A stretch of DNA of 64,000 nucleotides, from sequence record KT919973.1. The stretch is one strand, 5' to 3'. Shown piece by piece: positions 28,707-43,656 of the stretch; positions within the stretch are counted from its first letter, which is position 1; every line of letters begins with the position of its first letter. A model generated the notes under the pieces. It was not told the origin of the DNA. It saw only the letters and a program-made list of their open reading frames with translations, and made no database searches. The position numbers and the translations under genes were made by a program.

Positions 28707-28733
28707 AAAAAAGGGCGCTATTTGCGCCCTTTT
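28707..28733 (-). terminator. intrinsic terminator
   Basis: GGGCGC AAATA GCGCCC T6 (minus). Confidence 0.85.
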
Positions 28734-29248
28734 GTTTTTTGTTTCTTTGCTTTTCGTTTAGCTCGTCTAAGTTCTTTTCGTTTAGCGATTTTATCTGCTC
28801 TTCGAACTGCGTCGTAATCAGCAGCACAAGACGCAGCAAACGCATCAGGTTTGAACACGGGCTCTTGACCAACATATCCCAATATAGTACCTTTAGCTTC
28901 GTTATAGGCAACGTGAGATTTGTGTGTAGGGTCAGGGTTGATGTCAACGTGAACTTCAAAGCCTCTAGTACCGCACATTGGCTTAACCATTAGTGCAGTT
29001 TCACCCGCTTTGTATACTTCATTCATCAATCGACTTCTGATACCATCTTTACATGATAAGTATGCAGGTTCAGTCTCAACTGCTTTAAACACTTGAGCAC
29101 CTTTACTACCTTCAAGATGAATTATGATCACAGTCGCGTAACTAATCATGTCACTTTTACGCTTACTATCACACCCAACGTATATTGTGCTATTTGGATG
29201 ACTGTTATTGATAGCTGTTTCTATCGCTTCCCAATCGAACATTTTCAC
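28718..29248 (-). CDS. RNase H-like protein (YkuK/DUF458 family)
   Basis: IYVGCDS, RLMNEV, EVHVDIN, KPDAFAASCAAD. Confidence 0.85.
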   Translation of the reverse strand: MKMFDWEAIETAINNSHPNSTIYVGCDSKRKSDMISYATVIIIHLEGSKGAQVFKAVETEPAYLSCKDGIRSRLMNEVYKAGETALMVKPMCGTRGFEVHVDINPDPTHKSHVAYNEAKGTILGYVGQEPVFKPDAFAASCAADYDAVRRADKIAKRKELRRAKRKAKKQKTKGRK

Positions 29249-29291: not shown

Positions 29292-30728
29292 TTAAAAGCT
29301 GTAGCGTTCGACGCCTACAGTTTTCATCATGATCTTGACTGGCTCAAGCTCACCACCCAACAGTGAAGTCAAGATAGATGGGCTACAACCAGATACCAGT
29401 GCAGTACCCGCTTCGCCAGCTTTAACCGGAACGTTGCCAAGACGACCACGAATGTTCCAGAAGACCAGTTGTGGCATTTCATAACCAGCACGTGCGTACT
29501 TGGCTTTGATTGCATCGAAGTTCGCAGGTTCACCACGACCGTACCATCCACCACCAGTGTTTGCTTGATCGAATTCCATGTCACTCATGATAAGCAACTT
29601 GGTTGGCATATCTTCTTGTGAAAGATTTGCACGCTTCGCACGTTCTAACAGAACATCAAAGCACTTACCGATGTTCGTGCTCATGTCTTCGCCTGAACGA
29701 TTCATGTTATCAAGACGCTCTTTCAATGAAGAGCCGCGCAACTGGTGGAAGTGCGGGTCGCTTGAGAACGAAATGAACTGATCTTTGAAGATGCCTTCAT
29801 TGCGTTCAGCAACATAAATCCCAAGAGACATTGCAACTTGCTTACAAGTCACACCTGAACGGTCTGTACCTGCGTTAATTGGCGTGCTCATAGAGCCAGA
29901 CACGTCAACAACAGGGATGATGCGTTCATCAGAACCTTCCATGTAGTTTGGCAGAGCTTTCCATTGCTCGTTCGCTACAGACGCATTACCGTGACTAACG
30001 CTCTTAACGACATCGTATGGGAACAATGCGCCAGCGTTGATCTTCGCTTCACCTTTTTGAAGTGACTCGATGTAGTTTGTGTAACGTGTTGAAGCGTTAC
30101 GACCGAATGCTTGTTGATAACGAGCAGACGCTACAGAAGGCAACTTACCGAAGTCGATTGCATCCCATTTTTGCGCACACATCTTCTGCTCAACAGTGTC
30201 AGACAGAAGCGACAGAATCTTACGCCACTGCTTCGCAGTTACGCCAAGAGACTTGATTGTGCGCTTGAACACATGACCGTTTTTGCTGTTTTCACGTGGG
30301 AACCACTTCGCAGCAAGACCATTCTTGTCATTGACAATTGCGTTCGACCACATTGTAATCGCATCTTTTTCAAGACGTGTACCGAAAGCAGAAATCAAGT
30401 CATCGTAACGACCTAGTTCTGGAATTTTCGACATTACAGCACGAGCTACGTCAGGCTGTTCATTACAAAGTTTAGTGAATAGAGTACGGAAAGTACCACG
30501 TTCACCCGCACCACCGCGAACATCACGAGACCACAAAAGAATGCGTGTCGCTAGTTCTGGGTTTTCTGCAAACGCACGACCGAACAGAGTTTTAGACTGA
30601 TCGTTACCACGCATAGCAGCAATACCGAAGAACAAGTTTAGACACTCGTTACCTGAAGTGCTGTGAGTAACTGCACCGTTTGCTGTACGTGAATCGTTTG
30701 ATTGCATAGCTGACATAAATGCTGACAT
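29292..30728 (-). CDS. DUF2828 plus vWA protein (Ro60/TROVE-like RNA-binding protein)
   Basis: TANGA..H.TS, RDVRGGAGER, GRYDDL, AAKWFPRE, DVSGSMS MIDAS, SDMEFD, VFWN. Confidence 0.85.
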   Translation of the reverse strand: MSAFMSAMQSNDSRTANGAVTHSTSGNECLNLFFGIAAMRGNDQSKTLFGRAFAENPELATRILLWSRDVRGGAGERGTFRTLFTKLCNEQPDVARAVMSKIPELGRYDDLISAFGTRLEKDAITMWSNAIVNDKNGLAAKWFPRENSKNGHVFKRTIKSLGVTAKQWRKILSLLSDTVEQKMCAQKWDAIDFGKLPSVASARYQQAFGRNASTRYTNYIESLQKGEAKINAGALFPYDVVKSVSHGNASVANEQWKALPNYMEGSDERIIPVVDVSGSMSTPINAGTDRSGVTCKQVAMSLGIYVAERNEGIFKDQFISFSSDPHFHQLRGSSLKERLDNMNRSGEDMSTNIGKCFDVLLERAKRANLSQEDMPTKLLIMSDMEFDQANTGGGWYGRGEPANFDAIKAKYARAGYEMPQLVFWNIRGRLGNVPVKAGEAGTALVSGCSPSILTSLLGGELEPVKIMMKTVGVERYSF

Positions 30729-30763
30729 TGTTATTTCCTCATATTAAATTGCTGTAAAATGTC
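30724..30763 (-). promoter_or_regulatory. leader hairpin GACATT/AATGTC burying the ATG, with TACAGCAA motif in the loop
   Basis: minus strand GACATT TTACAGCAATTTAATATGAGGAAATAAC AATGTC; the ATG lies in the 3-prime arm. Confidence 0.7.
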
Positions 30764-30774
30764 GTTGATGTGAT

Positions 30775-30803
30775 GATTATACACGGATTATAACCCGTGT
30801 AAA
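30775..30803 (-). promoter_or_regulatory. T4-early-like promoter with palindromic spacer
   Basis: GTTTACA-CGGGTTATAATCCGTG-TATAAT; inverted repeat TACACGG/CCGTGTA at 30780-30801. Confidence 0.75.
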
Positions 30804-35992: not shown

Positions 35993-35998
35993 TAATGT

Positions 35999-36258
35999 GC
36001 AATACACAGACATTCGAGAAATGTTTTATCGTCTTTCCTTAAATCTCAATTGACTATAACGATGTTTCTCATCGGAAAAATACTCATGATTCGGCATGAG
36101 TCCTATTTCGTTTGACAGTACGAACACCGTCTTAATGGTCATTTCCTACCATGAGAATGCGACAGGCTCACGTCATCACTGAGAAAGCAGCTAGTGCGCC
36201 TCATTACTATTAAAGTTTGCTTTGATTTTGTAATGATTGCTGTACAATGTCTTATTGC
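35999..36258 (-). ncRNA. about 260-nt multi-hairpin RNA with GACATT-GTACAGCAAT motif
   Basis: closing stems GCAATA/TATTGC and GACATT/AATGTC; at least six internal hairpins; no ORF. Confidence 0.7.
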
Positions 36259-36263
36259 GAATT

Positions 36264-37929: not shown

Positions 37930-38300
37930 TAATGCCACGCGATACATCCTATATCGCTGCTAACATCTAAGTTAGCGTATCTTGCCTTTCGGCTACAGTG
38001 TCGTTTCCGACGAATTAAGTACAGACAATACCGAAGTGTTTTTTCGTCTTTTGCATAAATCGGAGTTGACTAGCTTATTGATTCTCAACAAGCAAATATC
38101 GTCTGTTTCAGCGACGCGCCTATCTGACTATTTCTAGACAGAGAGAATCTTTCCTTTCAAGCTGCGCCTAAGCAAGCTCAGGTTAAAATCAGCCCAGGTT
38201 AAGATCATCACTTCTTTTAAGTAATTTCAATTGTTTGCTGTATATTGTCTCTCTCACCATGCTCGTGATATGCCGAAGCAAAGTATCATTCGTCGCATGA
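37930..38300 (-). ncRNA. large structured RNA (230-370 nt) with ATACAGCAAA motif
   Basis: nested stems CGACGAAT/ATTCGTCG (38008-15/38288-95) and AGACAATA/TATTGTCT (38023-30/38243-50); motif immediately 3-prime of the inner stem. Confidence 0.6.
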
Positions 38301-39295: not shown

Positions 39296-39307
39296 TAAAT
39301 TTAAAAC

Positions 39308-39365
39308 AGTAATCCTTTTTGCTTTTTCCAAATAAAAGTGCTGTATTGTTTGCTGTAAGATTACT
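39308..39365 (-). ncRNA. minimal 58-nt motif RNA
   Basis: AGTAATC/GATTACT stem followed by TTACAGCAAAC. Confidence 0.6.
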
Positions 39366-39370
39366 TAAAC

Positions 39371-41864: not shown

Positions 41865-41980
41865 TGGTAGTCGGGGCTGGATTCGAACCAGCGACCACGT
41901 GCTTAACAGGCAATTGAAGGAGTGCTGGAGCGATACTTGTCAGTATCATTCTTCGTGCTCTACCACTGAGCTACCCGACT
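41865..41980 (-). ncRNA. tRNA-Asn(GTT)-derived RNA with a 41-nt insertion in the anticodon stem
   Basis: removing AAGAATGATACTGACAAGTATCGCTCCAGCACTCCTTCAAT restores a perfect 75-nt tRNA-Asn with CCA. Confidence 0.8.
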
Positions 41981-43537: not shown

Positions 43538-43656
43538 GGGAGAGTACGGGATTTGAACCACGTGACCAAAAGATTTACCTAGTTAAGGGTTGCAGAATGA
43601 ATGCTTATCAGAATTCTTTAACATTCTTTTGCTCTACCAGACTGAGCTAACTCTCC
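43538..43656 (-). ncRNA. tRNA-like RNA C with about 50-nt anticodon-loop insertion carrying ATTCTGCAA
   Basis: GGAGAGT/ACTCTCC, GCTC-AGTCTGGTA-GAGC, AAAGA/TCTTT, TTCAAAT T loop; no standard N73-CCA. Confidence 0.7.

Follow-up and report, generated by a model that had tools for sequence, protein, structure and literature searches.

Ro60 proteins, one from a phage included, are known to bind RNAs of the Y type whose genes adjoin their own (PMC4201824, PMC12135203). The surveys of Ro60 started from TROVE-annotated proteins, and the DUF2828/DUF7788 family lies outside them; neither paper mentions a Ro gene regulating itself via a Y-like site on its own mRNA (PMC4201824, PMC12135203). The Class I RNAs, reported as unique to Dictyostelia, are 42-65 nucleotides (nt) long and have a 6-bp terminal stem conserved in structure, not in sequence; the 5' G never varies and is paired to the C of a CUGU tail at the 3' end. 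An RRM protein, Rnp1A, binds them directly (Kjellin et al. 2021, PMC7919456). The present analysis concerns a Ro-like gene, phiST2_0169, and the hairpin in its leader, within a stretch of 64,000 nt (the window) identical (100%) to the record KT919973.1 of the Vibrio phage phi-ST2, a KVP40-like phage of T4 type. Autogenous repression by target mimicry is known for the ribosomal proteins L1, S8, L20, S15 and L4, for the threonyl-tRNA synthetase (ThrRS) of E. coli, and for gp32, gp43 and RegA of phage T4. The proposal evaluated here is that the Ro-like protein represses its own translation through a leader which mimics a module of non-coding RNAs (ncRNAs) encoded nearby; it joins two known kinds of system, autogenous control by RNA mimicry and Ro-Y-type ribonucleoprotein particles (RNPs). 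Such autoregulation, with its presumed binding, repression and titration, is the most economical reading and has about an even chance of being correct.

The Ro-like protein matches the Pfam families DUF7788 (E 1.6e-46) and DUF2828 (E 2.3e-29), and its open reading frame (ORF) is annotated in sequence records either as 'hypothetical' or as 'RNA-binding protein'. The first ATG of the ORF is taken as the true start, because M1 and F4 are near-invariant among homologues. Its architecture comprises an alpha-helical repeat domain and, after it, a vWA domain with a DVSGS MIDAS motif (DxSxS), whose residues D275, V276, S277, G278 and S279 are invariant in 30 homologues. A sequence search of the PDB with the protein found no Ro60. 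When its AlphaFold2 (AF2) model (predicted local distance difference test, pLDDT, 79.8; predicted template modelling score, pTM, 0.78) was compared with the PDB by Foldseek, the top five matches were full-length Ro60/TROVE chains (E 4e-8 to 3e-5; template modelling (TM) score 0.46-0.57, about 0.55). The matches include 9l5y (E 4e-8), 9kop, 2i91 and 9nf8, and comprise Ro60 proteins of the Thermus phage phiLo (E 4e-8), Xenopus and human. A Ro-like nature is supported by predicted fold and architecture, not by sequence-family membership: the label assigned by the sequence-only reading agrees with the Ro60-like predicted fold and with the MIDAS motif, and finds no counterpart in a TROVE sequence match.

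Likeness to the Ro60-Y RNA RNPs (YrlA; Ro60-Yrl1/Yrl2 of phage phiLo) goes beyond the predicted ring of helical repeats with vWA/MIDAS. It extends to putative ncRNA partners encoded beside the gene, to RNA 5' and 3' ends paired in a stem with conserved nucleotides, and to the association with tRNAs and tRNA-like domains, as in a mycobacteriophage Krypton555 module with a YrlA match, described below. Unlike Ro60, the phi-ST2 protein belongs to the unstudied DUF2828/DUF7788 family and matches no TROVE Pfam model. The signature of the phage module, a G-C-closed helix followed by UU-ACAGCAA, differs from the Y RNA/YrlA helix; the two large ncRNAs of the window, unlike Y RNAs, are twice as long and contain no detectable tRNA-like domain, and the Rfam YrlA and Y_RNA models gave no match to the window ncRNAs at E-values up to 5. 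With the mimicry operators the leader shares a ribosome-binding site carrying a reduced copy of the primary target, the target being putative here. It also shares the proposed titration logic, whereby repression would set in once high-affinity targets are filled, and a T4-type phage background, the lineage of classical circuits of this kind. It differs from them in the protein family, and in that the mimicked RNA would be a phage ncRNA rather than rRNA, tRNA or single-stranded DNA.

On the minus strand, the leader hairpin reads from 30763 to 30724 as GACATT-TTACAGCAATTTAATATGAGGAAATAAC-AATGTC. The 5' arm GACATT (30763-30758) pairs with the 3' arm AATGTC (30729-30724) across a loop of 28 nt. 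UU-ACAGCAA (30757-30749) follows the 5' arm, the Shine-Dalgarno (SD) sequence GAGG (30740-30737) is located within the loop, 8 nt from the ATG, and the ATG itself lies inside the 3' arm; the A-G following this arm completes a C-W-G tail. The -10 hexamer of the promoter ends 12 nt upstream of the hairpin, which would thus represent, given the deduced transcription start, nearly the whole 5' untranslated region. Sequence and coordinates of this minus-strand stem, with the ribosome-binding site in the loop and the start codon in the 3' arm, were confirmed as first described. The window contains two exact copies of the element GACATTNTACAGCAAT: one is in the leader (30763-30748), and the other opens ncRNA 1 (36251-36236), which has the matching AATGTCT at 36014-36008. 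The earlier observation of a stem and motif common to leader and ncRNA is correct. A further copy, found at 38249-38234, has 2 mismatches; by chance, 0.26 copies with up to 2 mismatches would be expected. The features are collected in Table 1.

Table 1. Gene, promoter, RNA elements and covariance model (R1) matches in the phi-ST2 window
Feature	Position	Strand	Remarks
Leader hairpin, minimal module copy	30724..30763	minus	Basis: sequence, covariance model, conservation, folding
Ro-like gene phiST2_0169, 478 aa	29292..30728	minus	ATG at 30728-30726
Ro-like gene promoter, sigma-70-like	30776..30803	minus	TTTACA-16-TATAAT (11/12); both hexamers kept in 8/8 aligned relatives
ncRNA 1, about 265 nt	35996..36262	minus	Between tRNA-Ser (immediately 5') and operon terminator stem 35989-35975
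ncRNA 2, about 230 nt, ncRNA 1 paralogue	38021..38252	minus	Inside tRNA array
Small stand-alone module	39305..39368	minus	Between tRNA-Asn and tRNA-Trp; best R1 match in the window
R1 match, small hairpin	39305-39368	minus	29.9 bits, E 2.2e-5
R1 match, ncRNA 1 5' end	36208-36255	minus	E 0.012
R1 match, leader hairpin	30720-30767	minus	16.8 bits, E 0.076; pairing as described
R1 match, ncRNA 2 5' end	38207-38246	minus	E 0.6

The stability of the hairpin was considered as evidence and rejected: the z-score is positive (+0.85), the folding energy only -1.2 to -2.0 kcal/mol, and 6-bp inverted repeats are common. Each strand of the window has 960 perfect repeats of this size with loops of 4-40 nt, and among 58 long-ORF ATGs two fall inside an arm of one. 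The significance of the leader rests on the motif and on comparative data, not on hairpin energy. The same figures, together with an energy not above that of shuffled sequences and with the fact that a gapped 15-mer repeat within 64 kb is not rare a priori, speak for a chance inverted repeat with a chance 15-of-16 match, in a leader kept by promoter-proximal or coding constraint only. This explanation is effectively refuted, as an independent covariance model recovers the leader, the non-coding 5' arm stays constant between flanks that vary, and the leaders of distant homologues share the architecture with different, complementary arms. A second ACAGCAA occurs inside the Ro-like gene (30680-30686, minus strand, within GUACAGCAAAC), at codons 15-17 (T-A-N); T15 and N17 are invariant, no convincing helix flanks it, and the R1 score is only 6.9 bits.

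The module consists of a 6-7 bp helix closed by G-C, a single-stranded NU-ACAGCAA on its 5' side and a C-W-G end. In the window it is found in the leader, in two large ncRNAs (225-265 nt) and in one small hairpin of the tRNA array; this array, of 26 tRNA genes, begins about 5.5 kb upstream of the Ro-like gene on the same strand. The closing helix of ncRNA 1, which begins a few nt from the CCA of tRNA-Ser, is formed by AGACAUU (36252-36246) and AAUGUCU (36014-36008), with GU-ACAGCAA at 36245-36237 and an outer helix GCAAUA/UAUUGC. In ncRNA 2 the corresponding helix pairs AGACAAU (38250-38244) with AUUGUCU (38029-38023), next to AU-ACAGCAA and with a 3' tail GU; relative to ncRNA 1, a U-A pair is exchanged for A-U by a compensatory swap. 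RNAalifold places the closing helix in 11 of 11 ncRNA 1/2 sequences from 8 phages, one phage having a U-G wobble. The small module is composed of AGUAAUC (39365-39359), UU-ACAGCAA, an A-rich loop, GAUUACU (39314-39308) and a tail GUU; at this position KVP40 carries AGCAAUC/GAUUGCU, a compensatory change, and a counterpart matched by R1 is located at L002:15172-15235. An Rfam scan of the window and of 21 related loci returned only tRNAs at or above the gathering score. Both large ncRNAs also end (36008-36060 and 38023-38075, minus strand) in a covarying 4-bp hairpin (GAGA/UCUC, CCGA/UCGG, GUGA/UCAC), whose loop bears a conserved A-rich element AAAGACGAnAAAAC, one base ahead of where the closing helix has its 3' arm. 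In marine relatives the corresponding position shows ACGAACAAC. The element contains the 'CGAA' noted in Y RNAs.

The covariance model R1 was trained on 24 metagenomic phage hairpins, with no KVP40-like sequence included. Its top four matches in the window are the four module sites, all on the minus strand, and the E-value of the leader becomes 3.6e-4 when the search is limited to 301 nt around the gene start. Applied to 72 loci, R1 produced 66 matches, all on the strand of the gene and nearly all within about 800 nt of it. Paired positions make up 81% of the cells, against 54% in shuffled alignments (0 of 500 shuffles reach the observed value) and at most 56% in slid controls; the covariation score is 0.63 versus 0.20. 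Double changes are seen in 6 of 7 pairs, and at the G-position pair G-C occurs in 44 sequences and G-U in 13. These counts lean towards structure, since the alignment was fitted to the model; an anchor-based scan, independent of R1, gave the same complementary arm pairs. In alignment A2 the G and ACAGCA are invariant and the next A near-invariant. The module is an RNA structure, and the leader hairpin is, with high confidence, a genuine instance of this family.

Readings of the motif at the DNA level were tried and discarded. A promoter is suggested by the -35-like TTTACA/TTGACA in 'UU-ACAGCAA', but phi-ST2 has no acceptable -10 at 16-18 bp and a promoter scan made no call at the motif there; as a caveat, TTGACA overlaps the motif at loci L056 and L054. 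The stem covariation and the G-U pairs led to the motif being read as RNA. The reverse complement ATTGCTGTA as a MotA box was rejected because every site is on the transcribed strand, and a DNA palindrome or operator because of the strand asymmetry, the G-U pairs and the location of 66 of 66 matches on the strand of the gene.

The locus is common to 49 related Vibrio phage records. Leaders of 8 relatives are 75-100% identical: the promoter hexamers, GACATT, ACAGCA, the GG of the SD and AATGTCAG are invariant, and the 12 nt ahead of the hairpin and much of the loop are variable. By this alignment, the non-coding 5' arm is under selection. Motif sites of the leader, ncRNA 1 and ncRNA 2 are kept in position in KVP40, nt-1, ValKK3, VH7D and PVA23, and the leader and ncRNA 1 copies also in D525, F86 and 1.081.O. 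In another subset of KVP40-like phages (the D480-D491 group, D527, CZ01 and probably VH1_2019) the leader is replaced by an insertion. In D482 (L004:8267-8857) and CZ01 (L011:8266-8859), a divergent GIY-YIG gene is located 18-36 bp upstream of the Ro-like gene. The insertion replaces promoter, leader hairpin and first codons, and the N-terminus becomes MTSLF, like that of distant homologues. No conserved replacement hairpin was found in the D482/CZ01 insertion variants, where ACAGCA abuts the ATG.

Homologues of the Ro-like protein were found in 711 phage records, including Felix O1-like, Listeria P100-like and Campylobacter phages and mycobacteriophages; the distant sample consisted of 80 IMG/VR loci, encoding proteins 46-54% identical. 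Leader copies of the module are present in five distant lineages (L040, L048, L054, L056 and L076), with ACAGCAA after the 5' arm. Their arms are AGAATT/AATTCT, AGATTT/AAATCT and, with G-U, AGAGTT/AATTCT, and their 3' arm ends 0-4 nt before the SD. In the Campylobacter phage CP81 two modules detected by R1 are upstream of the gene, with about 11 nt between the end of the second and the SD; three tandem modules of the Listeria phage LP-125 (R1) end about 75 nt before the AUG. Overall the module abuts or overlaps the ribosome-binding site of the Ro-like gene in at least seven lineages, in two registers: covering the AUG in the KVP40 group, and ending before the SD in the others. Its placement at the ribosome-binding site in separate lineages and in two registers argues that the position matters.

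In many marine lineages without a leader copy, a hairpin is found 30-800 nt after the stop codon, with arms such as GGTTCC/GGAACC, GATTCC/GGAATC, GGTTTC/GAAACC, GGCTTC/GAAGCC and GGAAGG/CCTTCC. It is followed by a larger RNA with the same kind of closing helix (GGATCG ... CGATCC), and then by a terminator. The Felixounavirus Alf5 has two modules (R1) in the tRNA array following the gene. In mycobacteriophage Krypton555 (L097:5470-5740), three ACAGCAA modules, their arms being GGACAC/GTGTCC, GGACCCC/GGGGTCC and GGACGG/CCGTCC, were recognized by eye after a gene annotated 'Ro-like RNA binding protein'. Within the second of them is a tRNA-like domain to which Rfam YrlA aligns at positions 24-84 of the model (38.3 bits, E 7e-5), short of its gathering score of 69; the match links DUF2828-type RNAs to bacterial Y RNAs. 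DUF2828 genes adjoin tRNA genes in every cultured phage examined. In the sequence-only reading the leader was the strongest link between protein and RNA; a stronger one is offered by the presence of the module beside the gene across unrelated phage families. Its expectation that the motif be kept upstream of homologues is largely borne out: it holds in the KVP40 group, in the five distant lineages with covarying stems and in CP81, and fails in L013-L033 and other loci without a copy, as well as in the KVP40-like phages which lost it to the insertion.

Two neighbouring elements were recorded in LP-125. A match to ROOL RNA (L096:2465-3016; 87.4 bits, E 3e-16), just under the gathering score of 99.1, precedes the three modules and the DUF2828 gene by about 650 nt, and an RtcB ligase gene lies about 1.3 kb downstream of the DUF2828 gene.

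Anatomy and conservation of the hairpin, its membership in the family, linkage of gene and module, covariation of the stem within the family and a Ro60-like predicted fold are established by these analyses, and a mechanism may be outlined on this basis. The ring-shaped Ro-like protein would recognize the G-C-closed helix with ACAGCAA on ncRNA 1, ncRNA 2 and the small hairpin; the ncRNA partners would be produced together with the tRNAs and, being abundant, would titrate the protein. The leader would act as a pared-down copy of the module laid over SD and AUG. At about -2 kcal/mol its helix is too weak to stop ribosomes alone; protein in excess of free ncRNA sites could bind it, clamping the helix over the AUG and occluding the SD and the 30S site, and translation of the Ro-like protein itself would be shut off.

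Hairpins sequestering the start site are known in the T4 genes e, soc and 49. A purely cis-acting hairpin, modestly damping initiation or differentiating transcripts with no protein involved, would suit a T4-like phage, and RNAfold assigns the helix in the first 89 nt of the mRNA a pairing probability of 0.73-0.87, with the AUG about 90% paired. Yet a helix of about -2 kcal/mol is hardly an obstacle to a ribosome, and shuffled sequences fold just as well. The invariant single-stranded ACAGCAA and the identity with the ncRNA module would be left unexplained, and an internal late-promoter-like TATAAATA is not present in the loop. An action in cis alone is thus very improbable.

The protein might also bind the leader for a role other than repression, such as protection of the mRNA 5' end, recruitment of newly made protein to RNA or activation of translation; or the promoter-proximal hairpin might itself be a small Class I-like RNA gene, its 3' end running by chance into the beginning of the Ro-like reading frame. 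Free-standing modules, 40-68 nt long, do exist as apparent RNAs (39305-39368 in the window, and in the Listeria phage), the spacing seen in LP-125 indicates that adjacency does not always mean overlap with the ribosome-binding site, and relatives with the homing-endonuclease insertion can dispense with the leader. In the KVP40 group, however, SD and AUG are held by loop and arm, so that a bound 54-kDa protein would cover the landing site of the 30S subunit. Five other lineages have the module right next to the SD, in another register, and an mRNA processed at the C-A-G tail would be severed at codon 2. Taken together, a role of this sort is rather unlikely.

A third possibility is that another factor recognizes the module, for example a host or phage RNase that excises the ncRNAs from transcripts of tRNA operons, or a host RNA chaperone; the DUF2828 neighbourhood would then reflect shared tRNA arrays, and the leader would be a signal for processing or decay. 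Consistent with this, modules mark the boundaries of ncRNAs placed between tRNAs (ncRNA 1 starts near the tRNA-Ser CCA), tRNA genes accompany DUF2828 genes in all cultured phages examined, and Rnp1A, an RRM protein, is the one factor proven in Dictyostelium to bind the look-alike Class I RNA directly (PMC7919456). Against it, in many marine lineages the module comes directly after the stop codon of the gene with no tRNA nearby, and in Krypton555 three modules follow the gene. The predicted fold is an RNA-binding ring whose relatives bind RNAs encoded alongside. The adjacent DUF458/YkuK RNase H-like gene (28718-29248, minus strand), directly downstream of the Ro-like gene, was examined as a general partner and rejected: it is present in all KVP40-like relatives and missing from the flanks of the 80 distant loci, being confined to the KVP40 group. 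Recognition by a different factor is therefore considered quite improbable.

Autoregulation by the Ro-like protein is plausible and partly supported by the comparison of homologue leaders, and several observations weigh against it. Both leader arms are constant in the KVP40 group, so that orthologues provide no covariation, and the 3' arm is additionally fixed by the ATG and a Ser codon. The leader scores only 16.8 bits with R1, its outermost pair being a C-A mismatch; 165 of 200 shuffled sequences fold equally well or better (z-score as above); and a search with the Rfam model RF01414, discussed below, gives no match to the leader hairpin, which has a short loop. About 12 of 50 KVP40-like records have a GIY-YIG homing-endonuclease insertion in place of the leader, and these phages are presumably viable, which makes the leader element dispensable. 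Many homologues, including the marine group L013-L033, carry no leader module. In compact phage genomes an upstream ncRNA module might abut the ribosome-binding site without regulatory purpose. Finally, the absence of a TROVE Pfam domain from the protein extends to E-values up to 5.

If autoregulation holds, a Ro-type protein would for the first time be seen to govern its own synthesis by means of a leader that copies its partner RNA, and the 40-nt operator would provide a simple handle on what the protein recognizes. Independently of the leader, the module has no Rfam entry and is seemingly undescribed in phages, where it accompanies DUF2828 'RNA-binding protein' genes in hundreds of cases; a likely RNA ligand can thereby be assigned to a large family from phage tRNA regions whose function is not known.

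The best Rfam family for the phage modules is Dictyostelium Class I RNA (RF01414), at sub-threshold scores: 28.4 bits for 39307-39364, 27.5 for a metagenomic module, 23.1 and 19.1 for two Listeria-phage modules, the gathering score of 41.5 being reached by none. The modules so matched are 39305-39368 (minus strand), L020:4446-4503, L096:3660-3715 and L096:3747-3802, and their motif UUACAGCAA agrees along with stem, invariant G, CUG tail and size. Class I RNAs and phage modules are alike in nearly all defining features: in size (about 40-65 nt), in a 6-bp terminal stem conserved structurally, in an invariant 5' G paired to the C of a CUG(U) tail with A(A)G preceding the stem, and in a single-stranded motif of about 11 nt at the 5' arm (Rfam consensus CCUUACAGCAA, as C-CUUACAGCAA). 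In the phage variants UCAGCAA, GCAGCAA and ACUGCAA only motif positions 5 and 7 change; C6, C9, A10 and A11, which belong to the positions reported as near-invariant in dictyostelids, are kept. Unlike Class I RNAs, which have a DUSE promoter about 60 nt upstream, the phage modules are found in tRNA operons or beside DUF2828 genes, with no DUSE promoter and no dictyostelid host, and some of them close RNAs of 225-400 nt.

It is tentatively suggested, as a possibility rather less probable than its contrary, that phage modules and Class I RNAs form one RNA class, in which the stem and the 11-nt motif would dock a DUF2828/DUF7788 protein, the phi-ST2 leader serving as operator. Were this so, Class I RNAs would not be unique to social amoebae, and a second, unrecognized 'Ro-Y' type of RNP would exist across eukaryotes and phage families (Vibrio, Felix O1-like, Campylobacter, Listeria, mycobacterial and marine). 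Class I RNAs are abundant and developmentally important, and the phage likeness makes their molecular partner directly testable.

Two further observations concern the surroundings of the gene. In its promoter an inverted repeat, CACGG ... CCGTG (30782-30799, minus strand), occupies the spacer between -35 and -10, and is kept with other sequences in relatives (CACGC/GCGTG in ValKK3, CGCTT/AAGCG in D525); it may represent an operator, or else a hairpin at the 3' end of the upstream transcript. In PeSL elements as published, the stem-loop precedes the promoter and is not within it. In the tRNA region two tRNA-like genes (41868-41980 and 43538-43656, minus strand) have normal acceptor, D and T arms, and an insertion of about 45 nt replaces the normal anticodon arm in both; they score 49-50 bits with the Rfam tRNA model and are not called by ARAGORN. 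Comparable 'tRNAs' of 113-119 nt are found in the Citrobacter phage Ci1 and the Aeromonas phage phiWae14, both of which have a Ro-like gene.

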